Origin: Hypanus sabinus
Lineage: Eukaryota
Length of the DNA: 64,000 nt
Assembly: GCF_030144855.1 (NCBI RefSeq)
Contig: NC_082727.1
Coordinates: forward strand, 36,208,001 to 36,272,000
Direction of reading: 5' to 3'
The notes beneath the pieces were generated by a model. The model was not told the origin of the DNA and ran no database searches. It saw only the letters and a list, made by a program, of their open reading frames with translations. How positions within the stretch are numbered: the first letter of the stretch is position 1; the number at the start of each line of letters is the position of its first letter. This document shows positions 2,348-48,097 of this stretch, one piece after another. The position numbers and the translations under genes are program-made.

Positions 2348-3652
2348 TGTTACGTAGCCCGTAACTGGGTTAACAAACCAGCATAAAAGGAATACACGTT
2401 GCAGTTTGAAATTACTAGTAGCTAATAAAGATTATCAGCAAACTAAGTAATACAGTACAAAAATAAAATGCAAATATATATATACAGAAGTGAGAAGTGT
2501 GGTAAAAGGAATCAAAAACCAAGCTCTTCCAAAGTCTAGGGATAAATGAGTAGTCTTAGGAAATGATGAAAGTTCAGATCAGTTCAGTTTAGCTTAGGTT
2601 GAAGTANNNNNNNNNNNNNNNNNNNNNNNNNNNNNNNNNNNNNNNNNNNNNNNNNNNNNNNNNNNNNNNNNNNNNNNNNNNNNNNNNNNNNNNNNNNNNN
2701 NNNNNNNNNNNNNNNNNNNNNNNNNNNNNNNNNNNNNNNNNNNNNNNNNNNNNNNNNNNNNNNNNNNNNNNNNNNNNNNNNNNNNNNNNNNNNNNNNNNN
2801 NNNNNNNNNNNNNNNNNNNNNNNNNNNNNNNNNNNNNNNNNNNNNNNNNNNNNNNNNNNNNNNNNNNNNNNNNNNNNNNNNNNNNNNNNNNNNNNNNNNN
2901 NNNNNNNNNNNNNNNNNNNNNNNNNNNNNNNNNNNNNNNNNNNNNNNNNNNNNNNNNNNNNNNNNNNNNNNNNNNNNNNNNNNNNNNNNNNNNNNNNNNN
3001 NNNNNNNNNNNNNNNNNNNNNNNNNGAGAGAGAGAGGGTGAGCAGCTCTGCCAACAGGCAAACCTTCCATGGTCTTCTTGTTCCGTTGTACTGATGTGGT
3101 CATTCGGATATGACCCCTCTGTTCTCGGCTAGACCGTTCTTCCATGGTGGACTCGGCCCTCTGGCATGAGTGGACACACACACACGCCCCCCCGGTCCTG
3201 CCATCACACTGTGAGCTTTGTGACCGATCTCCGATTCAGTCCTCCAAGCCCCCAGCCTTCCTGTGGGTGCACAACACTCTCACAGTATCTCGTGGCGTGT
3301 CTGCCGGTGTCTCAGCAGACCTGTCTTTAACTCCCCTGACGGGGTATCAGCCATCCATCAACTGATCATGTCCATGTCCATCAAACTGGCCACTCCCTCC
3401 TGTCGCAGCAGGCACCTGGCATCACTGCTGTGTCAGCAGGGATCCTCCAAACAGGCCAAATGTCCTTGCGTTAAAGTCAACAATTAGTGAAGAAGCCATC
3501 ATCCTTTTAATCCTTGTCTCTCTCTCTCTCTCTCTCCCATCTGCAGCAGGATGCCTCCCCCCTCATTATCTCTCTCTCTCGTTAGCAGCATAGTTCACAG
3601 GGTGGTCAACTCTGGACCCCATCTCCAACTGGTTTTCTCATCACACATAACA
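2348..3652 (-). repeat. 3' LTR of the Gmr1-like element (contains N gap 2607-3025)
   Basis: TGTTA...TAACA termini, adjacent PPT, homologous to 7198-8604. Confidence 0.85.
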
Positions 3653-7197: not shown

Positions 7198-8604
7198 TGT
7201 TACATTCCCCGTTACTGGGTTAACAAACCAGCAGAGATGGAATACACATTGGAGTCTGTAATTACCAGTAACTAATAAAGTTTATTAGCAAGACTAAGTA
7301 ATACAGTACAAAATAAAATGTATATATATACAGAAGTGTGGTAAAAGGCATCAAACATCAAGCTCTTCCGAAGTCTGTGAGTAAATGTATAGTCTTAGGA
7401 AATTATAACAGTTCAGGTCAGTTCAGTTTAGCTTAGGTCAAAGTAGTTGCNNNNNNNNNNNNNNNNNNNNNNNNNNNNNNNNNNNNNNNNNNNNNNNNNN
7501 NNNNNNNNNNNNNNNNNNNNNNNNNNNNNNNNNNNNNNNNNNNNNNNNNNNNNNNNNNNNNNNNNNNNNNNNNNNNNNNNNNNNNNNNNNNNNNNNNNNN
7601 NNNNNNNNNNNNNNNNNNNNNNNNNNNNNNNNNNNNNNNNNNNNNNNNNNNNNNNNNNNNNNNNNNNNNNNNNNNNNNNNNNNNNNNNNNNNNNNNNNNN
7701 NNNNNNNNNNNNNNNNNNNNNNNNNNNNNNNNNNNNNNNNNNNNNNNNNNNNNNNNNNNNNNNNNNNNNNNNNNNNNNNNNNNNNNNNNNNNNNNNNNNN
7801 NNNNNNNNNNNNNNNNNNNNNNNNNNNNNNNNNNNNNNNNNNNNNNNNNNNNNNNNNNNNNNNNNNNNNNNNNNNNNNNNNNNNNNNNNNNNNNNNNNNN
7901 NNNNNNNNNNNNNNNNNNNNNNNNNNNNNNNNNNNNNNNNNNNNNNNNNNNNNNNNNNNNNNNNNNNNNNNNNNNNNNNNNNNNNNNNNNNNNNNNNGCG
8001 AGGGTGAGCAGCTGCAACAGGCAAACCTTCCATGGTCTTCTTGTTCCGTTGTACTGATGTGGTCATTCGGATATGACCCCTCTGTTCTCGGCTAGACCGT
8101 TCTTCCATGGTGGACTCGGCCCATCTGGCATGAGTGGACACACACACACGCCCCCCACCGGTCCTGCCATCACACTGTGAGCTTTGTGACCGATCTCCCG
8201 ATTCAGTCCTCCAAGCCCCCACCTTCCTGTGGGTGCACAACACTCTCACAGTATCTCGTGTGTGTCTGCCGGTGTCTCAGCAGACCCGTCTTTAACTGCC
8301 CTGACGGGGTATCAGCCATCCATTAACTGATCATGTCCATGTCCATCAAACTGGCCACTCCCTCCTGTTTCAGCAGGCACCTGGCATCACTGCTGTGTCA
8401 GCAGGGATCCACACAAACAGGCCAAATGTCCTTGGCGTTAAGTCAACAATTAGCGAAGAAGCCATCACACTAAATCATCCATTTAATCCTTGACTCTCTC
8501 TCTCTCCCATCTGCAACAGGATGCATCCCCCCTCTTCATCTCTCTCTCTCGTTAGCAGCATAGTTCACAGGGCGGTCAACTCTGGACCCCATCTCCATTG
8601 GTTT
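7198..8604 (-). repeat. 5' LTR of the Gmr1-like element, missing its outer ~20 bp (contains N gap 7451-7997)
   Basis: Starts TGTTAC after the PBS and matches the other LTR up to ...ATCTCCA..GGTTT, then switches to IFIT-intron sequence. Confidence 0.85.
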
Positions 8605-9447: not shown

Positions 9448-10589
9448 CCTCCTTGCCTGACTTCCTTCACCAAACCCACTCTTCCCTCCCAAGACTTATT
9501 CCTTGTTCCATTGCTTCCAATACATAATGTTTTTCTTTGCGTATGTTGTATATTTTTGTGTATGCTTTTGCTTTGATGTTGACCCTGTCTTCTCCTCTGG
9601 TGTATGTTTTTCAGATTCACTTAAAATTCGCAGTCTCTGTTTTTAAATGTTTGGCAATTCACCCACCAACCTCTTGTATGTTAAGATAATTCCTAAAAAC
9701 AGTCTATGTTGATTTTGATGATATTTTAAGTTTTTTTTTTCATTTTCCAAACCCTGGTGATCTTGGTTTCTGTTTTGCCACTGTTGTATTTGGTCTCATA
9801 GGCTATTTTTGTTTGACGTAATTCCCATAGTTACCATAATTTCCCATGATTCCTTTTTCATTTGATGTTATGCTTTGCCTCTTTAGTAATCAACAAATGG
9901 ATGTTTCATCCTTGCTGATGGAAATCAGTTCTGCATGTTTTTTTTTCAAATTTCCCCAAAACACCAATAGTAAACATTCAATCTATTCAGTTTATTATGT
10001 CAGCAGCCTGAACCACTGCATAAACAGTCAGCTTTCTATAAATCTAGCACTTTCACAACAGTTTCGGTTTCACCTTCCAAACACCCAGGTTGCATTCAAT
10101 CGTAGTCCCAGAAGTTTGTAGATGATATCACCAGAGTGTGTTGTATCTCAAATAGCAATAATTACATTAGTCATGATAACAAACTTTCATTCAATGTCAA
10201 AAACATAAAAGATCTGGTTATTGACTTCAGGATGGTTGGCAGTTCACATCCTCCTGTCTATATCATTGATACTGAGGTCGAGAGAGTTGAGACTTCAAAT
10301 TCCTAGTAGTGAACATCACCAATGGTTCGTCCTGGTCCAATAAAGAGACGCAGTGCCAAAGAAATCTCACCAGTGACTCTACTTTTGAGAATTGTAGACA
10401 TAGCTCAGCACCTGACTGAAATCCAGCCTTCTATCCAGTGACTCAGTCAACACTTCTCAGTAAAGAGATTAGCATAATCAAAGACCCCACATGCACCGCA
10501 GACATTTTTTCTTCCCCCCCCCCACCTTTTGGGCAGAAGATGCAAAAGCACAAAACATGTGCTACCAGGCTCAAGGAGAAGTTCTAAGG

Positions 10590-12682: not shown

Positions 12683-13877
12683 TAAAATCTTTAATAACTG
12701 CCTTGGAAAGGCCATTATCCAAGTTTCCACTCTCTGGGAAGTTGCTGCTGTGCCTGAGTGGGTAGTGGAAAGCTTCACTGGCAAATCTGTGAGTTAAAAA
12801 CATGGCCGATAATATGTGAGAAAAGCCCTGAGGAAACTAATCCTCTGAAGTCTCAAGTGAGCTTTTCTGGCCACCTTGCAGACTCGCAGTCCCCATCTTA
12901 TGAAATGATCAAATCACATCCAATTAAGTGGCATGGGAATATGTCTAATGTAAGATATAGGCCTCTTTCAACATGATTCCATACATTAAAAAATAAAATA
13001 TAGCTTTTTCCACAGGATTTCCCAATGCTGCAATTCTTTAACTAAATTGGGGATTTCCTTCAGCTACTTCTTTTACGATATCTGAAAGTTAAGAAGTGCA
13101 GCACAATGTTGGCGCACAAGTTTTGTCCCACGGTATCATTCAACAGTTTATTGGTTGTTGTTCCCAGCTCTCTCAGAAATACTAGATCCATCACTCATCA
13201 TATTCACTCCCTGGGCTCTCTCTTCCACTGGGAATCAGGTCATAGTTCACAGGCCCATTGGAATCCAGAATTTCCCCTGCAGTTTCCATTCTTTCTTTCT
13301 GATTCCCCATTAATTTCCCTTACACCTCATTCTCCTCTCTTCCTGCAGCAAAACTCCATCACAGACGTTTCACAACCTCCTTTTCCTCATTCATTCATTC
13401 CTTTCTCCTCAGTCAGCCCAGTCCTGATTTCACAGATGTCTCATGGGAAAGATTCCATTCTGATTTCAGAGGTGAGCTCAGTGTCGGAGGCTCTCTGTTC
13501 CTGAATCTCCACATGTTCTTCAGCAGACTCCCTGTGTCACCTGCCTGCTACCTCAATGCCCATGATGTCTATAAGTCACATCCCCACTGAGCAGAACTAA
13601 TGAAAGCTATAACATAGGGAGGAGATCGTTACAGAGTGAGAGCAATGATGGATAACAGTGGGTTAAAGTCTGAACTCTTCTGGATTGCTTGGGGGAGATA
13701 TTAAATAATTCCTGTAAACCATCAAAGATTGTTGGAATATTATTGAAAAGTCTAACTAGTTGTCAGGATTAGCATGTAAAGGGTTTAATCTGGGTGATGT
13801 TGGTGTTAAGATTTCCTGCTTTAAAGATAGTAGATTATTGTGACCAATTCAATTCTCAATGAAGGAGCAGATTTGCC

Positions 13878-13903
13878 AGTTTCAGTTTCCAGTTTCACTT
13901 TCC
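13878..13903 (+). promoter_or_regulatory. Tandem ISREs of IFIT-A
   Basis: AGTTTCAGTTTCC followed by AGTTTCACTTTCC; both match AGTTTCNNTTTCC and lie ~70 bp upstream of the TATA box. Confidence 0.9.
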
Positions 13904-15672: not shown

Positions 15673-16586
15673 TATATGCTCAGCTGAAATGAAAAAGTTA
15701 CTTGCAGCATGACAAACAAACACATAGCATCATATAAGAAGCATTCACACGAGAAACATAAATCTAAATTACAATTCTCACAAGAAGAACAAAAACAAAC
15801 TAAGCACTCAGTGTTGTTAAACAAGAGTGATGAAAGTTATGTTGATTGATTCAAGAACTGAATGGTTGAAGGGAAGTAGCTGTTCTTGAACATGATGGTG
15901 CAGGATTCCAGACTTCTGTACCTTCTGTCTGATGGTAGTTGAGACCATGGCGTGTCCCAGATGATGGATGTTGTCTTCTTCATTTAAACTGCATACTGAT
16001 CATATTTTCATAGCATCAGCAGTAGCTTTAGGCTCTTCCTTGAGACTTTTGGTCACAGTTTCACTATTGGCGTTTTTGTCTGATGATGGGTTTCATCTGT
16101 TGGAGACATTGGCTGATCAGCCTTGCTACCAATTGCTTCTGAAATTTACCAGCCATGTACTCAGATAGAGAGACAAATGACTGAGATGGTGTCACAAAGA
16201 TGCTCTTTACTTTCATTTTCCCAGCTACTGAGTTAATAATCTGCTGGACTGGCCCAAATTAGAATGTAAATATATTCTGCTCTATTGCATGATTTAAAAC
16301 ACATTCCTTCAACATCATCTGAACATAACAATTATTTTTATCTGGCTGTCTTGGCTTATTGGTTGGTATTTCCAGAAGCCAGAGGATTTCCACTGGCCTA
16401 ATCAGCATCTGGTAGAATCTGGTCTGACCAGGTAGAGATTGAACTGTTCTGCACACATCGGTCTCTGACTATGCCCCAGCTCAGGAACTCAGAATTTGCT
16501 AATTTTGTCAAACTAAGTATATAGCAGTTAGGATGGAGAATTGATTTCACATCAATAATTTTCAATTACTTTGTGCTTTCATATAG

Positions 16587-18039
16587 CAACACTCTGAAGG
16601 AATCCCTGTTTGAGAAACTCTGCCAGCTTCAGTGTCACTTCACATGGGTTCCACAGAAGGACAACATTGACTTCAGAGATTTGAAGCTTAGATTACAAGA
16701 TTCTATAAAACTTGATGTAAAATATCAAGCCTCATCCTACAACCATCTTGCTTTTGTGAACTGTCAGCAAGGTGACTATGAAGAAGCAATTCAAAATTTA
16801 AAGGAAGCTGAAAAGATTTGGAGAGAGAACCACGAAGATGAATTTGAAAGAAGAAGCATCATCACCTATGGAAACTTTGCCTGGGTGCATTACCACATGG
16901 GACAACTGACTGAGGCCCAATCCTACCTCGACAAGCTGGAGATGATCTGTAAACCGCTCAGTGACGGCCCTCACTATACAGCAATGATACCCCAGGTGTA
17001 CGGGGAGAAGGGATGGTCACTGTTAACTTTTGGTAATATTGTTTACTATGAGGAGGCAAAGGAATGTTTTGAGAAGGCTTTGGAGGAGGATTCCAATAAT
17101 GTGGAGTGGAATATGGGCTTTGTGACTGCTGTTTATCGTCTGGAAACAATTTCAGGTGTTTCAGAGAATCAGGAGCAGAATCAATGTGTGAAGTATCTGC
17201 AACGGGTGCTGGAGCTTGACCCAGATGACACGGTGGCCATGGTTATGTTGGCCCTAAAACTGCAAGAGTTCAATGAAGCAGAGAAAGCAAATGAATTAGT
17301 TGAAGAAGCATTGAGGAAGTCCCCAGATTTGCCATATGTGCTTCGCTATACAGCAAAATTTTATAGAATAGCACGAGCTTTCGATATCGCAATAGGCCTG
17401 TTGAAGAGAGCTTTAGAGCTTACTCCATGCTCTGCCTTCTTACACCACCAAGTTGGTATGTGTTACAGAGGAAAACTGTTCACTCTGAAAAAGAAAGCAG
17501 ACTACAACTATCCTGGCAGAGCTGTATTTCAACAGAAAGCTGAGTTGATCAGGATGTGCAAATATCATTTAGAAAAGGCATTTCAACTGAAATCATCATT
17601 TATTTTTGCAAAACTGGATTTTGCAGGAATCTGCTTAGAAAATGGAGAACTAGACCGAGCAGAGGAGATCTACAACAGTCTGCTGAGCTTGAAGGATCTT
17701 GCTCCAGATAATAAGCAAGCACTAGTTTTACAAGTTGGATTATTTGAACTGTACCACAAAAGATCTGAATCAAACGCCATCACCTATTTACTGGACGGAC
17801 TTAAAATCCATCCTGGAAGTAAAAATTGGAAGTTCTGTGACAGTAACTTGAGAAAGATTTTAAGAAGCCAAATTAAGAGAAATCCAAGAAACAGCAAAGC
17901 CTTTGGTGTTCTTGGATTAGTGCACCAGCTGGCTGGGGAGAAGGCTGAGGCTATTAAATGCTTTGAAATGGCCTTAGAATTTGATCCCGGCACTGAAGAA
18001 CATCTCACAGCTCTTAGTGAATTATGTCTTTCTACATAG
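16587..18039 (+). CDS. IFIT: IFIT-A exon 2: interferon-induced protein with tetratricopeptide repeats (IFIT5/IFIT1-like), ~485 aa spliced
   Basis: Acceptor TTTCATATAG|C. IFIT signatures QLQCHFTW, TYGNFAWVHYHMG, EKGWSLL, AKECFEKAL, PYVLRYTAKFYR, FLHHQVGMCYR. Uninterrupted ORF to TAG. AATAAA at 18342 is conserved in B (48505). Confidence 0.95.
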
Positions 18040-34715: not shown

Positions 34716-34960
34716 GAAAGTTTAGAAGTGCAACTCAATGTTAACGCATAGGTTTTGTCCCATGGTATCATTCAACAGTTTATTGGTTGTTGCTGTCAAC
34801 TTTCTTAGAAATACTTGGTTTATCACTCATCATATTCACTCCCTGGGCTCTCTCTCTGAATGGGCATCAGATCGTTGATCTGATTGGAATCCAGAATTTC
34901 CCCTTGCATTTTCCATTCTCTCTCTTTCTGATTCCCCATTATTCTTCCTTAAAACTCTTT

Positions 34961-37900
34961 ATGTCTTGAGCTGATGGAGCAAGTTTATTATCATGCTCGG
35001 TTTGAGCGAAGACTGACTGACCCAGCGTCTTGTCGGTTACTTTACGTTTGTTAAAGCCTTGTCGTGCTTCCTTGATACACATGAAACTTGTGCAGGGTTG
35101 AAAAATTGAATGGCAGCCACTCTCTAGCACATTGGTCTTGAGTGTGCTAACCGTTGGTTTGTGTACCTTGCCAAGGCACACCTCTCCTATCACCACCCAT
35201 CCTAGATCCAGGCGTTGCGCAAAGTGGGCGTCGTGTGGTCCATTGACCTGCTGTCTAACCTTGTGCACCCAAAGAACATCTCTTCCTAATAGCAGGAGTA
35301 TTTCTGCTGTTGGATCCAGTTCTGGGATGTGTTTGGCGATGTGGTGGAGATGTGGCTGGTGTAGCACTGCGCTTGGCATCGGGATCTCAGTGCGGTTATT
35401 CAAAATTTCATTGCACTCTAAGAGTGGAGGGAGACAGATGATGACTTTACCATCCAGGGACGAGCTGGAAGACTTCTGCCTTCCTTCCATGAGTTTCTAC
35501 ATTGCCTGAGCAAGTTCTAAGGTAGTATGGAAACTGATCACTCTCAATGTGGAACAATTTAAAGAACTCTGGACTGACTAGTGAGCGATTGCCCTGATCG
35601 TCCAGAATTACATAGGCTTTGATGGCCTTGTCTTTGGCTCCTTTAGGGTACACCTTAGTGAGGCAGATCTTTGAACAAGAACGGCTTGACTGAGCTTGAC
35701 CGCAAACTTCTGTACAGCTCGAGCTGACAACAGTTGTCCTGGAGTGAGCCTCTCCCTCCCCACTGTCCTGTTGTGGGGGTGAAGGAGCGTTGTCGGTTTG
35801 CGGTAACGGGCCGGGATGCATGGCCCGATCGTGATTAGTGCTATCACATTCCGGACACTTCACGGCGATCGTACACTCTCTAGCAAAGTGAGAGGTCGAG
35901 GAACAGCATTTAAAACATATTCATTTCTCCTTGAAAGGGCCATCCTCTCTTCAAGGGGTTTTTCCCTAAATGTTCTGCATGTTCTGAGAGGGTGGGGTTT
36001 GTTATGCAATGGTCATTCCTTGCTAGGGTCGTGGTTAGTTGTAAAGACTTCAGTCTTAAGCACTGAGACGGGTTTATTAATGTCGAAATTATTCGAAGAG
36101 GATTTATCTGGCTCGGTGTAAACTGTACTGCTTCCTTGACCCATGAGGCTAGAGTCGTTTTGCTTCTTCGCCTCCCTGCACACAAAACTAGTGAAATACT
36201 CAAAGGGAGGAAATCGACCATTGTGGTCTTCTTTGTACTCTGAGGCAACAGACACCCACCTGTCCTGCAGCCAAATGGAAGTTTGTCCACGATTTGTCTA
36301 ATCCCGGATGGAGTATCTAGGTATACTAGACCAGCTGAGTAGCCATCTTCTTTGGCGCCTTGAATCTCCATGAGTAAATCTCCGAGCTCCCTTAACTTGA
36401 TGTGATCTTTGGCTGACACCTTAAGAAAGTTTTCCAGACGTCGGTATAGCGCCGCTTCAATAATTTCAGGGGCCGCATAGCCCTCCCGAAGTCTCTCCCA
36501 TGCTTTGCTTAAGGCTAGCTCGGGTTTGTTGATGTACACTGAACGTATGCATCTCACCTGTTCGCATGATTCTTTCCCCAGCCATTTCGCCATAAGATCC
36601 AACTCTTGGGTTGCTCTGAGCTGGAGTCCGTCGATAGCGTTGGTGAATGTGAAGTACCATGCATGGTAATTTTCAGGTTTGTCGTCGAACTGGTATAGTC
36701 CTGAAGTGACGAGATCTCGTCGTACTAAATACTGTGCCAGGGGTTCAATTGCAAGTGGCATGCGGCCTGGGGAAGTATGTCGGCAGGTATATGACTGAGG
36801 GCGTACGTCTGTTATGGAATTTGCTGTTCTGAATTCTGCCTTTGCCTCTCTTCTCACCAAATCTTGTAAGTTTGGTGTCGAGAAGTATTTGTCATCAGCC
36901 CTTTCATTCTTGACTACATCGCGGAGTTGCGAGGGTAAATTGTCTCCCTCAGATGGATGTGGTGCAATTGGGTCTCTCTGAGACTCCTCATGATGTGGGG
37001 TGTTATCAAATAAGTATGGAGTGGAAGAACGAATCTTCCAATCCGTTTGAGATTGGACATAGTCGCTTGTGCGTTCCAATCTGGTCTTTGCTGAAGTAGA
37101 TTTTACGTTAACCAGATCTTGCATTTCTTCAGCATCTTCTATGAACTCTGCTTCCATCCTGGCAGCAGCTTCTTCTCGTTCCAGAGTCAGCACTTCTAAC
37201 TCTGCCGCTTTCCTTGTCCTTTCCAGCTGGTTTTCGGCTTCTCTGGCAGCCGCTTCCATTTTCAATTTTGCTTCTCGTTTAGCGTAGCGCAGTCACACCT
37301 TGGCGGCTTCTGCCTTAGCTCTTGCATGGGCGGCCTTACTTGATGATGTCCTACTGCCCCCCTCGCTGGGTGACAACGACTTGACGCTGGATCGAGTTGT
37401 CATTGCAGTACTTGAAACACCTGATAATGCCGCTTTTTCACTGTAGTGTTCTCGCTCAGTGTGTAAGATAATGCTGAACTAAACACTGAGATAAACCGCA
37501 GTCAATATAAACAAGGTCGCAGTAAGATTAACCATTTACTGTTCATTCTTCCTCATTAATGTATGGCGAAAACTGTTGAATAAACAATACAAGATGTGTA
37601 CAGCAGTTGTTTCCTTCTTAATATTACATTTACATCATAAATACTTGCAAAGGTAAAACTACAACAACTACAGTACATTAAAGTGCAGCATATAGTCAGA
37701 ATCTACCTACACCATTGACTGCTTTAAATACACTTCAACGCAAACTATCCGCAACTCTTTAACTAACGAAAACATAAATCCTTTCAACCATCATTACTTT
37801 TAACAGGATCAGCGTTAACATTTTAATTCAACATATTGATTATCTCATGACTTACAGCATTGCCTTTACTATGTTTCTGGTGCGTAGAGAGAAAACTTTG

Positions 37901-38123
37901 CTGCTGCTTGCGCTCGCACATGTCTCGACGCTCACCTGCCTGTTTCTCCAAACCAGCATTTTCCCACAGGACGCAGTGAAACCGGATGTGACGTCATCGC
38001 ATGCCGCGATATCTCACAGACAATGAATTTATGTTAAACAATCCTAACTTTAACTAGAATGCTAACAAATGAATTACTAAGCAAAAATATTATAAATTAA
38101 ATAACTGCCATAAAGGCAACACA
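34961..38123 (-). mobile_element. BEL/Pao LTR retrotransposon, 5' half (LTR, gag, protease), truncated before RT
   Basis: LTR 37442-38123 (TG...CA). Gag from ATG at 37403 (one stop), containing FDDKPENY..W and KLRELGDLL. Cys/His knuckles. BEL protease YVILDDQGNRSL. LLLGRD and LDLGWVVIG motifs. Confidence 0.88.
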
Positions 38124-38375
38124 AAAATATTGTAAAAAGAAAGACATAAAGCACAGATGCTCACGGGCACAGGCCAGCTAGAATGCAGTTCTGGGGGAGG
38201 AGGTTGGCTGCTTGGGGCATGCGCTGCATTTTATCATGCACTTCTTTTTATCATGCGCTGCCTTTTTTCGTAACAGTAGAAACACCTTCTGTTAGTGAAA
38301 ACAGGTAGTTAATGTAGGTGTTTCATAACAGTGAAGTGTCGTAAAGCGAACACTTGAAAAACGTGGGGACACATG
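38124..38375. mobile_element. Tigger/pogo-like DNA transposon end
   Basis: Ends GTCGTAAAGCGAACACTTGAAAAACGTGGGGACACATG followed by TA, which is TIR-like. Confidence 0.55.
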
Positions 38376-38377
38376 TA

Positions 38378-41300
38378 ATAAATAAATGGTTTTTGCTAAT
38401 TTGTTTGTGCTGAATATAGATGACCCAGGGCTTTTTTGAACTTTTTTTTTGCTTTTACCAGACTTAAGTTTATATTCCTTGGTTTTAGGAGTAGACTTTA
38501 AATGCTGTTTAGATCCTATCTTAGATTGGTTTTCTTCTAAACGATTGACTTGTAGTAGATCTGCCTCTTTTATCCAAACTTTTCTAATGAAATGTGATAT
38601 TGTTGATATTTGGCATTTTTGTATCTGACAGCTAAAGCATACTCATTTTTTTCTCATGTTCATCAATCGTATTCCAGTATTGATTTTTTTTATTGATAGC
38701 CAATTGATTCCACTCTTTCAATCCTATGAATATAAAGATCACACTCCTGTATTTTTATCTTTAAATCTTCTGGGTGTCTCCCAAATAAACAGATTATGGC
38801 ATTTTAATCCAATTTTGTTATCAGATAAAGATTCTTTAAAATTTCTGGAAAGGCAAATTATTCTTTTTTTTGAAGAGAATATGCTAGAAGAGACTTCTTG
38901 TCTTATTTTCTGGGATGCACTTAAGGCTTATATTAGAGGTCAAATTATTTCCTTTACCAGAAGTGTTAAGAAAAAAGCTAATAAGGAGAGAATTGAATTA
39001 GCCAATCAGTTGAAACAATTAGACCAAAACTATGCTTTGGCTCCTGATCCTGTTTTATATAAAAGAAGTGTTGAAATTAAAACTAAATACGATCTGCTTC
39101 TAACTTATCCAATGGAAATGCAAATTTTAAAAGATAAAAGTCAGTTTTATGTTCATGGAGAAAAAAAATGGGTAAACTATTAGCTAACCAATTAAGGACC
39201 TTTATAGGTAAACATCAAATTAAAGAAATTTGTCAAGCTAATGGTGATAAACCATCTGATCATTTAGAAATAAACGATACTTTCAGAGAATTTTACTCTA
39301 AACTTTATAGTCCTGATCCTCCTAAAGCTAATACTCTAATGAATAATTGTTTTTAGATCGATTAAACATTCCTACACTTTCTGATGCTATTCAAATATTG
39401 TTGGATCAACTATTTCTTATGAGGAAATTGCTGAGGTTGTTCACTCTTTGCACTTGGGGAAGGCTCCGGGTCCTGGTGGATTTTCTGGAGAGTTTTATGA
39501 GATTTTTTCCTCTTTGCTTATACCTCATTTATATTCAGTCCTTTCTGACTCTTTTAAATTAGGTAAGTTGCCACAATCTATTTATGAAACCTCTATTTTG
39601 CTTATTCTAAAAAAGCATAAGGACCCGGTTGAATGCTCTTCTTATAGACCTATTTGCTTACTTATGTTGATTCTAAAATTTTATCTAAACTGTTGGTTCA
39701 TAGGATTGAAAATATTTTGCCATCTATTATCTCTGATGATCAGACTGGATTTATCAAAAATCGATACTCCCACTTTAATATTTGTCATTTACTGAATGTT
39801 ACTTATTCTCCTTCTAAAGAGATTTCAGAAAGTGTGATACCTTTAGATGCTGAGAAAGCCTTTGATCAGGTTGAATGGAATTCTCTATTAAAAACTTCAG
39901 AAAAGTTTAACTTTGGGGGCTTTATTTTATTCAATATATGAAATTACTTTATCTATCTCCCTCTGCTTAGATTCTTACTAACTCTCAGTTCTCTAAACCA
40001 TTTAAACTTCATCGTGGAACTAGATAAGGTTGTCCTTTGAGTCCTTTACTTTTTGATTTGGTTTTAGAACCTTTAGCTATTGATTTCTGAGAATCTAATG
40101 ATATCACTGATATATTAAGGAAGAATATTACCCACAAAGTTTTGCTGTCTGCTAATGACCTTTCACTCTACATTTCTAATGTGGAGTCGTCTTTACCTTC
40201 TTACTTTCTTTACTCTTCAGCTTTTCAGGATATAATCTTAACTTTCATAAGAGTGAACTGTTTTCTTTAAATAATTTGGTATTAGTTAATAGTAACCTTC
40301 TTTTTAAAATTGTAAAAAATCATTTTACTTATTTGGGCATAACAATCACTAGGAATTATAAATTCCTTTTTAAAAGAAATTATTTTTACACTTCTGAATT
40401 ATACTAAGAAGGTACTATTAAATTGGTCACCCCCTGTCTTTATCGTTGATTGGCCGAATCAATTCTATTAAAATGAATATTTTGCCTAAATTTTTATATT
40501 TATTTCAGGCCACACTTGTTTTTATTCCTAAATCCTTTTTTGATTCTTTGGATTCTATTATATCTTCTTATATATGGAATAATAAAAATTTTCGATTAAA
40601 CAAAATTCATCTTCAAAAAGCTAAAAAGAATGGAGGTTTAGCCTTACCCACTTTTAGGTTTTATTACTGGGCAGTCAATACACGGAATCTTACGTTTTGG
40701 TTACATTAATTGAGAGGACTGTCCGGGCTAGGTTTCTTTAGAAGGTAACTCTGTTAATAAATTTTCTACCATTTCTCTTCCTGGATCCTCAGTTCCTTTA
40801 TCTTTAAGTAATTTAACTGATAATTTTGTAGTTAAACACACTTTGAGGATTTGGGTACAATTTGGAAAATATCTTGATTTATTGAGTTTTTCACTTTCCA
40901 GTCCCATTTTTCTAACTATTTTTTAAACCTTCTATGTCTGATGTAGTTTTTAAAGAGTGGAATAGATTGGGTGTTAAATGTTTTCATGATTTGTTTGTTG
41001 GAGATAGTCCCTCTTCATTTGAACAACTATCAGTTAAGTATAGTCTACCGAGAACTCACTTTTTTTGATATTTACAAATTAGAGATTTCTTGCATTCTCA
41101 AGTACATACATTTCCTAAAAGTCCATATAAAAATTTACTTGTAATAATTTTTCATTTGTAACTCTTCTATAATGCATCTATATCTAATACTTAAGGTATG
41201 TTGTTGGGAATGAGAAATATTCCTTTAGATAAAATTAAGAATCTTTGGGAACAAGATTTATGGATTTCAATTTCTGAGGACACTAGGAATGGAATTTTTA

Positions 41301-42096
41301 AATTGGTTAATATCTCATTGTTATGTGCCTATCATTCCCACCTACACCTTAAAATGGTTCATAGAGCACATATGTCTAAAGATAAGCTGTCTCATTTTTA
41401 TTTAGAGATATCCCCCTATTGTGATAGATGTAATAATGGAGAAGCTTCACTAATCCATATGTTTTGGACTTGTCCGAGGTATGAAAAACATTGGAAGGAA
41501 GTATTTCAAATTTTTTTGGTGCTTTTTAAAGTAAATTTTAAACCTAATCCTTTGACTGCTTTATTTGGTATTGTTGGAGGAAATGATAATATTGTGGAGA
41601 CACACGATTTGCATATTTTGGCCTTTATTTCTCTTATATCTAGGAGGGCATTGCTGCTTAAGTGGAAAGATGCCACTCTTCCTACTCATATTCATCAGTT
41701 ACATAATGTTATGTCTTGCTTAAATTTAGAGAAGATTCACTGTTCAATTTCTGAACCTAGACAAGATTTTTTAACATTGTGGGGACCTTTTTTGAATTAC
41801 TTTCAAAATCTTTGATTTGCTGTTAAGCACAGATGTTGGCTAATAATATGTTTTACTATATGTTAAGGAGTTTTTCCTTTTTTTTTTAACCAGACAGCTG
41901 TTTTTTTCTGGTAGTGGGTTTAGATTTTTTGTATAATAAATTTATTTCTTTTCAATTATATACTTGAATTGAATCTATATGGATATGGGGTAATTACACC
42001 TCATCTGTGATTTCAATATATTGTAATCAATATATATTATATATCTTACTTTACCCTGTATTCTTTTATGTAAGAAAGTAATAAAAATATTGAAAA
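38378..42096 (+). mobile_element. L1 LINE ORF2 (mid-EN to 3' end), degenerate
   Basis: WDALKAYIRGQII, KAPGPGGFSGEFY, DAEKAFDQVEW, GRINSIKMNILPKFLYLFQ, CDRC..GEASLIHMFWTC. AATAAA at 42080, followed by an A tail. Confidence 0.92.
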
Positions 42097-42261
42097 AAAA
42101 CTCTTTCTCCTCCATCCCTGCAGCAAAATTCCACAGCAAAACCTTTACAAGCTCCTTTTCCTCTTTCATTCATTCCTTTCTCCTCAGTCAGCCTAGTCCT
42201 GATTTCAGACATGCCTCATTGAAAAGATTCCATTCTGATTTCAAAGGTGAGCTCAATATGT

Positions 42262-42842: not shown

Positions 42843-42868
42843 AGTTTTAGTTTCCAGTTTCATTTTCC
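42843..42868 (+). promoter_or_regulatory. Tandem ISREs of IFIT-B
   Basis: AGTTTTAGTTTCC (one mismatch) followed by AGTTTCATTTTCC. Confidence 0.85.
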
Positions 42869-45695: not shown

Positions 45696-46647
45696 AATAT
45701 GCTCAGGTGAAATGAAGAAGTTACTTGCAGCAGCGTCACAGTCACATAGCATCACATAAGGAGCATTCACAGAGAGAAACATAAATCTAAACTATACACA
45801 ATTCTTACAAGACAGAAGATAATTATAACACAAATAAACTAAACCCATTTTAGTGCAAAGCACTCAGAATTTTAAACAAGAGTGATGAAAGTTATGCTGA
45901 CTGGTCCAAGAACTGAATGGTTAAAGGGAAATAGCTGTTCTTGAATGTGATGATGCGGTATTCCAGGCTTCTATACCTTCTAACTGATGGTAGTTGTGAC
46001 AACATGGCATGTCCCAGATGATGGATCTTCTTGACTTAAACTGGTTACCCATGGTGTTTTCATAGCATCAGCAGCAGCTTTAGGCTCTTCTTTGAGACTT
46101 CTGTTCACAGATTTTTCATTAGTTTTTTTGTCTGATGATGGGTTTCATCATCTCTGGCTAATCAGCCTTGCTACTAATTGCTTCTGAAATTTGCCAGCCA
46201 TGTATTCAGGTAGAGAACTAACTGACTGACATGGTGCCACAAAGTTGTTTTTTTCCATTCCTTTTCCCAGCTACTGTGTTAATGATCTGCTGGACTGGCC
46301 CAATCCTTAAATGACAAATTGGAATGTAAATATATCCTGCTCTCTTTCTTAATTTAAAACACATTCAGCTAGCATAGTCAGAACACAGTAATTATTTTAA
46401 TCTGGCTATCTCGGTTTATTGTTTGGTATTTCTAGAACCAAGACTGTTTCCCACTGGGCTAATCACCATCTGGTAGATACTGATTTGATCAGGAAGGGAT
46501 TGATCTGTTCTGCACCCATTGCTCTCTGACTATGCTGCACCTCAGGAATTCAGAATTTACTAATATTGTCAATCCAAGCATTTAGCAGTTAGGATGGAGA
46601 ATCAATATCACATCAATAATCTTTGATTACTTTGTGCTTGAATGCAG

Positions 46648-48097
46648 CAACACTCTGAAGGAATCCTTGTTTGAGAAACTCCGACAGTTTCAATGTCACT
46701 TCACATGGGTTCCAGAGAATGACAACACTGACTTCAGTGACTTGAAGCTGAGATTACAAGATTCTATAAAACTTGGTGTAAAATATCAAGCCACATCCTA
46801 CAACCATCTTGCTTTTGTAAACTGTCAGCAAGGTGACTATGAAGAAGCAATTCAAAATTTAAAGGAAGCTGAAAAGATATGGAGAGAGAACCACAAAGAT
46901 GACTTTGAAAGAAGAAGCATCATCACCTATGGAAACTTTGCCTGGGTGCATTACCACATGGGAGAACTGACTGAGGCCCAGTCCTATCTCGACAAGCTGG
47001 AGATGATCTGTAAACCGCTCAGTGATGGCCTTCGCTATACAGCAATGATACCCCAGGTGTACGGGGAGAAGGGATGGTCATTGTTGAGTTCTGCTGCTGA
47101 ATACTATGAGGAGGCAAAGGAATGTTTTGAGAAGGCTCTGCAGGACGATTCTGATAACGTGGAGTGGACTATGGGCTATGCAACTGCTTTGCTTCGTCTG
47201 GAAGGTATTTCTGGTGTTCCAAAGAATCAGGAGCGAAGTCAGCCAGTGAAGTATCTGCGACGGGTGCTGGAGCTTGACCCAGATGACACGGTGGCCATGG
47301 TTATGTTGGCCCTAAAACTGCAAGAGTTCAAGGAAACAGAGAAAGCAAATGAATTAATTGAAAAAGCATTGAGGAAGACCCCAGGTCTGCCATATGTGCT
47401 TCGTTATGCAGCAAAGTTTTACAGAATAGGAGGAGATCTTGATAGAGCAATAGGCCTGTTGAAGGCAGCTTTAGAATTTACTCCATGCTCATCCTTCTTA
47501 CACCACCAAGTCGGTATGTGTTACAGAGAAAAACTGTTCAGACTGAAAAAGAAAGCAGACTGCAACCATCCTGACAGATCTGCATTTCAACAGAAAGCTA
47601 AGTTGATCAGTAAGTGTAAATATCACTTTGAAAAGGCATTTGATCTCAAACCATCATTTACTTTTGCAAAATTGGATTTTGCAGGAATCTGCTTGGAAAA
47701 TGGAGAAGTAGACCGAGCAGAGGAGATCTACAACAGTCTGCTGAGCTTGACGGATCTTGCTTCAGATCATAAGCAGGCAGTAGCTTTACAAGTTGGATTG
47801 TTTGAACTGCACCACAAAAGATCTGAATCAAATGCCATCGTCTATTTCCTGGACGGACTTAAAATCCATCATGGAAGTAAACAATGGAAGCTCTGTGACA
47901 GTAACTTGAGGAAGATCTTTAAAAAACAAATTAAGAGGAATCCAAGAAACAGCAAAGCCTTTGGTGTTCTTGGAATGGTGCACCAGCTGGCTGGGGAGAA
48001 GGATGAGGCTGTTAAATGCTTTGAAAAGGCCTTGGAATTTGATCCTGGAAATGAAGAATATCTCAATGCTCTGTGTGAATTACACCCTTCTAATTAG
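46648..48097 (+). CDS. IFIT: IFIT-B exon 2: interferon-induced protein with tetratricopeptide repeats (IFIT5/IFIT1-like), 484 aa spliced
   Basis: Acceptor GAATGCAG|C. QFQCHFTW, TYGNFAWVHYHMG, PYVLRYAAKFYR, FLHHQVGMCYR. Intact ORF to TAA. Confidence 0.95.

Follow-up and report, generated by a model that had tools for sequence, protein, structure and literature searches.

How do pieces of three classes of transposable element come to lie within one L1-type target-site duplication? The question is raised by a 64,000-nucleotide stretch of the Hypanus sabinus genome (NCBI RefSeq assembly GCF_030144855.1, contig NC_082727.1, positions 36,208,001 to 36,272,000 of the forward strand; this whole stretch is the window, and positions are counted from its first letter). 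Upstream of the gene IFIT-B it carries a 7.1-kb block composed of part of a BEL/Pao long terminal repeat (LTR) element, one end of a Tigger-like DNA transposon and the 3' part of a decayed L1, a long interspersed element (LINE). We consider it probable, at roughly 0.7, that this block was inserted as one unit by L1-type target-primed reverse transcription of a transcript from a mosaic that had already formed.

The boundaries of the block carry most of this argument, and the features that define them are the following.

34951 to 34960: left copy of the target-site duplication, AAAACTCTTT, with CCTT directly before it and a bottom-strand nick at TTTT/AA
34961 to 34963: filler at the 5' junction, two to three bases (AT, perhaps G), unlike the target and unlike the BEL family
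42097 to 42106: right copy of the target-site duplication, AAAACTCTTT
13322 to 13331: paralogous (not orthologous) empty site in the IFIT-A flank, with a single copy, ACACCTCATT, in gapless alignment

Read directly, the two copies of the 10-mer are identical at all ten positions. The bottom strand at the left copy is 5'-AAAGAGTTTT/AAGG-3', which fits the L1 endonuclease consensus TTTT/AA, the classical site of that enzyme. Before the right copy stand an AATAAA (42080-42085), seven further bases and a run of eight A (42093-42100), four of which may belong to the duplication, leaving a tail of 4-8 A. When 34961-42106 is removed, the IFIT-B flanks match the paralogous IFIT-A flank across the join without a gap, and BLAST returns one unbroken alignment of 779 columns at 79% identity, running from 34360 through the join to 42272 against 12724-13495. 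The paralogue thus gives an independent measure of where the insert begins and ends, and the duplication falls exactly on these edges, which excludes a chance match; the chance of an exact 10-base repeat right at such paralogue-set boundaries is about 1e-6 per placement. The hallmarks of an L1-type insertion are therefore all present, namely the duplication, the nick consensus, the poly(A) signal with its A tail, and the empty site. An earlier reading of this DNA, made from its letters alone (the sequence-only reading), had described the same 10-mer at both ends directly after the L1 poly(A) signal and tail, a TT/AAAA endonuclease site formed with the CCTT before the left copy, and colinearity with the IFIT-A flank once the interval is taken out, and our comparison bears out all three observations.

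From left to right, the first component of the insert is the BEL/Pao-like element, which lies antisense to the L1.

34964 to 37458, minus strand: BEL/Pao-like internal part, antisense to the L1, with two frameshifts; it contains no reverse transcriptase (RT), RNase H, integrase or 3' LTR
35913 to 37404, minus strand: BEL leader and gag
35450 to 35920, minus strand: BEL zinc knuckles and start of the protease
34963 to 35496, minus strand: end of the BEL protease
37459 to 38123, minus strand: single BEL LTR (the 5' LTR) of about 665 bp, starting with TGTG at 38123; its inner edge near 37459 is approximate

The coding sequence comprises a leader, a gag frame of 460 codons, zinc knuckles and a protease, spread over three frames by the two frameshifts. 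Pfam is silent on both the BEL pieces and the L1 endonuclease pieces, and the identities of the elements are accordingly drawn from sequence matches to the PDB, from homologues and from Atlas leads; scans of the BEL pieces returned no Pfam match even at E = 5. The homologues of the gag piece are retroelement proteins of Hypanus sabinus and Hemitrygon akajei, two of which carry PF03564, and among the Atlas look-alikes of the protease piece are PF05585 (DUF1758) clusters at a score of 0.90, which we take as a lead only. A second LTR was found neither in the insert nor in the rest of the window.

Where the BEL copy stops can be judged from other members of its family in four public sequencing runs (X18, X1, X3 and X4), for which the evidence consists of assembled contigs rather than raw reads and depth is not to be equated with copy number. 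In each of the four runs the depth over the BEL interior and its LTR is thousands-fold, with the LTR reaching 49,000 in X18. Contigs that match rightwards from 34963/34964 share a different sequence to the left, ...AAGAAAATGGC[A], in three of the runs, and this common continuation indicates that the BEL family extends past the point where the copy in the window ends. That point lies two to three bases from the left duplication. At the other end, contigs that pass 38123 go into unlike sequences (agreement 0.62), as expected if 38123 is the true LTR terminus; the inner LTR end near 37459 is placed by sequence and depth only.

Two further differences from the family were seen within the BEL copy. 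At 35461 the family contigs of X18, X1 and X3 switch to a common different sequence, TCGAGCTGGAAGCC..., and a long X4 contig ends there, which implies that the copy in the window is rearranged or deleted relative to the main family form, at its frameshift. At 37227-37260 most family contigs, in all four runs, step back by about 31-33 bases, so the usual BEL form has a short stretch duplicated in tandem where gag begins, a duplication that is absent, perhaps by loss, from this copy.

The second component is short and is bounded on its right by what reads as a transposon terminus.

38124 to 38375: one end, 252 bp long, of a high-copy pogo/Tigger-like non-autonomous DNA transposon; the BEL LTR interrupts it, and the part to the left is absent
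38376 to 38377: TA beside the Tigger-like terminus, the expected pogo/Tigger target dinucleotide

At 38375 the sequence can be read as a terminal inverted repeat (TIR)-like end (in reverse complement, CATGTGTCCCCACG...), and depth in X18 falls there by about 45-fold, from 4,212 over 38161-38360 to 93 in the next bin (the flank is at about 6-12). On the strength of this terminus and the TA, the repeat at 38124-38375 is tentatively named pogo/Tigger-like. Within the window, a second match to the terminus was not found at up to three mismatches, and nor was the other half of the element.

The third and longest component is the L1.

38378 to 41815, plus strand: decayed L1 open reading frame (ORF) 2, from about codon 109 (mid-endonuclease) through the RT to the C-terminal zinc domain, with at least nine frameshifts as well as stops
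41816 to 42096, plus strand: L1 3' untranslated region (UTR), with AATAAA at 42080-42085 and a short A tail at 42093-42096 or up to 42100

Pfam recognises RVT_1 at 4e-11 in the L1 pieces, and zf-RVT at 8.5e-5 with 23.6 bits, under the 27.5-bit cut-off. The piece at 38629-39180 resembles residues 227-328 of human L1 ORF2p (8e-9) and that at 39648-39938 resembles residues 536-627 (about 1e-11), and from their colinear spacing against the human protein the L1 part begins near ORF2 codon 109, within the endonuclease. The Pfam endonuclease model gave no match in the endonuclease pieces even at E = 5; GDFN-like and SDH-like motifs can be read in them. The 5' part of the L1 (ORF1 and the 5' UTR) is missing from the insert and was not found elsewhere in the window, and the nine or more frame changes and the stops show that the element is old and dead. 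In X1 only, depth rises to 11,522 at 40161-40360, as against 27-1,428 in the other runs, which means that some short sequence there is hugely abundant in that run alone. Taken together, these results agree with the anatomy given by the sequence-only reading, namely an antisense BEL that ends before the RT at the left duplication and has a single LTR, one Tigger end, and a decayed L1 that begins mid-endonuclease.

If the mosaic was copied from a transcript, its junctions should have existed elsewhere. The LTR/Tigger and Tigger/L1 junctions both look like ordinary integration junctions, which implies that the mosaic existed first as DNA. For the LTR/Tigger junction the support comes from contigs of other copies, and for the Tigger/L1 junction from a reading of the letters (the TA and the TIR-like end). 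A contig of 423 nt from X18, which is another organism, aligns without a gap to 38186-38608, across the Tigger/L1 junction, at 24 mismatches (94%); its depth of 10.6 is approximately that of single-copy sequence in X18. Most of the letters private to the L1 copy in the window are missing from X18, and together with the bridging contig this indicates that the Tigger/L1 junction exists in a sequence other than the copy in the window. It is very unlikely that a Tigger entered the same TA of another L1 copy independently and in the same orientation, so the junction exists by descent in that other sequence. The bridging contig may be the orthologue, the donor or a sibling copy, and would fit each equally well. 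Contigs from X1 match 39280-39450 and 39984-40475 with 100% identity, and this run is therefore from the same species or from the source sample. Other searches were negative within their scope: when the insert was compared by BLAST with the remainder of the window, no further copy of any part was found; an exact 22-mer of the Tigger/L1 junction was absent from the metagenome contigs searched, a protein word search with the 116-codon open frame that crosses this junction returned nothing, and one with the L1 ORF beside it gave only two matches, at 52-53%, all three being uninformative on the stingray genome.

These observations enabled us to propose a model for the origin of the insert. At a donor locus elsewhere, an old L1 would have been interrupted near ORF2 codon 109 by a pogo/Tigger-like element, which would then itself have been interrupted by a BEL/Pao element in the opposite direction. 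A polyadenylated transcript of this locus, ending at the L1's own AATAAA, would have been taken up by the enzymes of an active L1, which would have nicked the bottom strand at TTTT/AAGG upstream of IFIT-B and primed on the A tail. Copying would have proceeded from the L1 3' part through the Tigger end and the BEL 5' LTR into the antisense gag-protease region, and would have halted inside the BEL, through 5' truncation or at the point where the RNA itself started. Joining of the resulting cDNA of 7,136 bp (34961-42096) would have added the two to three filler bases and the 10-bp duplication. L1 insertions commonly show a few such filler bases at the 5' junction, extra nucleotides of a kind treated in PMC2912911, and copying from a transcript predicts the observed structure exactly, with these bases included. 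In this model we infer that there was a donor locus, that the mosaic was mobilised in trans, and that the Tigger entered the L1 and not a truncated L1 the Tigger. A truncated BEL directly beside the duplication is explained most economically if a mosaic formed beforehand was inserted in one L1-type event.

The age of the parts is compatible with this model. The BEL, LTR and Tigger parts retain 2.7-3.7 CpG per 100 bp, as opposed to 0.5 in the L1 (38378-42092) and 0.8-1.3 in the flanks. Together with the perfect 10/10 duplication, this retention suits an insert that arrived recently with an L1 that was by then old. The duplication and CpG figures do not by themselves separate transcript copying from nesting in place followed by deletion.

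Several points weigh against insertion from a transcript. No donor locus was found by the searches described, which did not reach the stingray genome, and the X18 contig may be no more than the orthologue, in a related ray, of the same insertion. With 4-8 A, the tail is very short. The plus strand of the insert holds eight AATAAA and nine ATTAAA upstream of the final signal, and with these 17 earlier hexamers a read-through RNA of 7 kb requires leaky polyadenylation. L1 proteins favour their own RNA, and the copying of a dead L1's transcript is rare. Finally, the left junction at 34960/34961 is bridged by none of the listed public-run contigs; the flank contigs of X18 and X4 end near 34856-34862.

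The main rival explanation places the whole history at the present site, with an L1 insertion followed by a Tigger into its endonuclease region and a BEL into the Tigger, and then a multi-kilobase deletion that took the L1 5' part, the left Tigger half and the BEL from RT to 3' LTR. Nested insertions and partial deletions are far commoner than the retrotransposition of a mosaic, the order and relative ages of the parts (L1 oldest, BEL youngest) fit such a history equally well, and the filler at 34961-34963 could be an end-joining scar. However, the left breakpoint of the deletion would need to lie no more than about three bases from the duplication's inner edge, with no flank base lost, since the paralogue alignment is gapless there, a coincidence of about 1 in 1000 if the breakpoint was free over several kilobases; moreover, an L1 old enough to have gathered at least nine frameshifts is less likely to retain a perfect 10/10 duplication. 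We therefore regard nesting in place as unlikely. A variant that shares the mechanism of transcript copying but reverses the nesting order has the donor as a 5'-truncated L1 inside a Tigger that already held the BEL, transcribed from upstream (for example from an antisense start in the BEL) and retrotransposed at full length, as in 5' transduction, with no 5' truncation. The depth drop at about 38361-38378 would look the same if the Tigger family extends past that point elsewhere, and the placing of the Tigger terminus at 38375 is a reading of a single copy. Position 38375 nevertheless reads as a pogo/Tigger inverted-repeat terminus followed by TA, as expected for a Tigger that entered an L1, and the L1 truncation point would have to coincide exactly with that terminus, which makes this variant decidedly unlikely.

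A long shot is that the mosaic is one copy of a propagating composite non-autonomous stingray retroelement, assembled like SVA or LAVA from BEL, Tigger and L1 pieces and copied repeatedly by L1; if so, the junction-bridging contig at 94% in another ray would be its second member. Template switching, in which the L1 RT jumped during insertion from L1 RNA to an RNA with the Tigger end and antisense BEL, as likened to the U6/L1-type chimeric retrocopies of mammals, would also yield a single duplication around a chimeric insert and would make a nested donor L1 unnecessary. We consider it very improbable, since the jump would need to fall exactly at the transposon terminus and TA (38375-38377), and the Tigger/L1 junction found at 94% in another genome or locus would be inherited unless that contig is the orthologue of the insertion. 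The prior existence of the mosaic as DNA counts against both template switching and twin priming. The latter was rejected, as orientation switches only at the canonical LTR terminus and there is no internal inversion junction. It is also conceivable that a mis-join or collapse within the abundant BEL family has imitated a truncated structure, given that this family is thousands-fold deep, that the listed contigs leave the left junction unbridged, and that only the L1 parts at 39280-39450 and 39984-40475 are matched at 100% by the independent run X1. Collapses, though, join repeat to repeat, whereas here unique flank meets mid-BEL exactly at a duplicated 10-mer whose partner sits after the L1 tail 7 kb away, an arrangement that an assembler has no reason to make, and an assembly artefact is accordingly extremely improbable.

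The insert lies within a group of IFIT genes, whose main exons and nearest regulatory site are as follows.

16573 to 18039: main exon of IFIT-A
46634 to 48097: main exon of IFIT-B
55056 to 56504: main exon of IFIT-C
42857 to 42867, minus strand: interferon-stimulated response element (ISRE)-like site in the IFIT-B promoter, 751 bp past the right duplication

Sites of the ISRE-like form GAAANNGAAAC occur 11 times in the window against 2.3 expected, including those at 13879-13902, 42857-42867, 51172-51182 and 10061-10071. IFIT-A has a tandem pair and IFIT-B one strict match; the earlier placement of the insert about 740 bp upstream of the IFIT-B ISREs is thus right, although the plural finds only this one strict match. 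The interferon-response element of IFIT-B, an antiviral gene, now has a 7.1-kb insert with CpG-rich foreign DNA about 750 bp upstream of it, and the CpG-rich part of the insert (about 3.4 kb, 34964-38375) lies about 4.5-8 kb upstream of the IFIT-B promoter. Both flanks also hold an exon-like stretch about 105 bp past the insertion site (13436-13480 and 42211-42255), with an ATG, about 12 codons and GTGAGC; it is open in the IFIT-A flank (ATGTCTCATGGG...) and has an in-frame TGA at the fourth codon in the IFIT-B flank. One possibility is an upstream leader exon, belonging to the IFIT genes or to a different gene, and in that case the insert falls in its promoter or 5' UTR region. Elsewhere in the window, runs of N occupy 2607-3025 and 7451-7997.

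Comparison with known systems shows which aspects of this locus are new. In human L1, 5' transduction and read-through chimeric transcripts carry along sequence that lies upstream of the element, and in the present insert, likewise, a single duplication encloses sequence that would have preceded the L1 part in the RNA. It differs from 5' transduction in that the cargo consists of other transposons and lies inside a broken L1 ORF2, not ahead of a full-length L1. The movement of LTR-element and DNA-transposon sequence by a LINE, whose novelty the sequence-only reading overstated, has in both cases been published for primates (PMC11195612). The retro-DNAs of Tang and Liang, with 748 events in ten primates, have TT/AAAA sites, 5' truncation and parent sites (PMC11195612). 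As here, they are DNA-transposon sequences without a full pair of inverted repeats, set within a long duplication at TT/AAAA, often 5'-truncated and with an A tail, and copied from a parent locus by the L1 machinery (PMC11195612). Unlike in the retro-DNAs, the transposon piece here is only 252 bp of a 7.1-kb mosaic with an L1 as its 3' end; furthermore, the host is a cartilaginous fish and the parent site is inferred.

A second parallel is provided by the HERV-W processed pseudogenes, which, according to work cited in PMC11195612, are LTR-element transcripts mobilised by L1. In them, as far as that citation describes them, and on our model in the present insert, LTR-retroelement sequence was moved by LINE machinery and not by its own integrase, and the end of the copy bears L1-type hallmarks. 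The template of the HERV-W copies is described there as proviral RNA in sense orientation that carries its own poly(A), whereas the BEL here would be an antisense passenger that used the L1 poly(A) signal. SVA and LAVA elements are L1-mobilised mosaics of several repeat classes (PMC5174737), and resemble the present insert as composites that include LTR-element and L1 pieces and, on our model, in being mobilised in trans by L1 (PMC5174737). They are families of many copies, in contrast to the single insertion of about 7 kb seen here, for which there is no evidence of further spread. The mechanism is therefore already known, and the case is unusual only in that a single 7-kb insert unites three classes and is very clearly bounded, a clarity that is owed to the paralogous empty site. 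As a clean and datable non-mammalian case in which LINE machinery would have copied a transcript with LTR-element and DNA-transposon pieces, this locus adds to the evidence that genomic sequence of many kinds is moved by L1-type enzymes.

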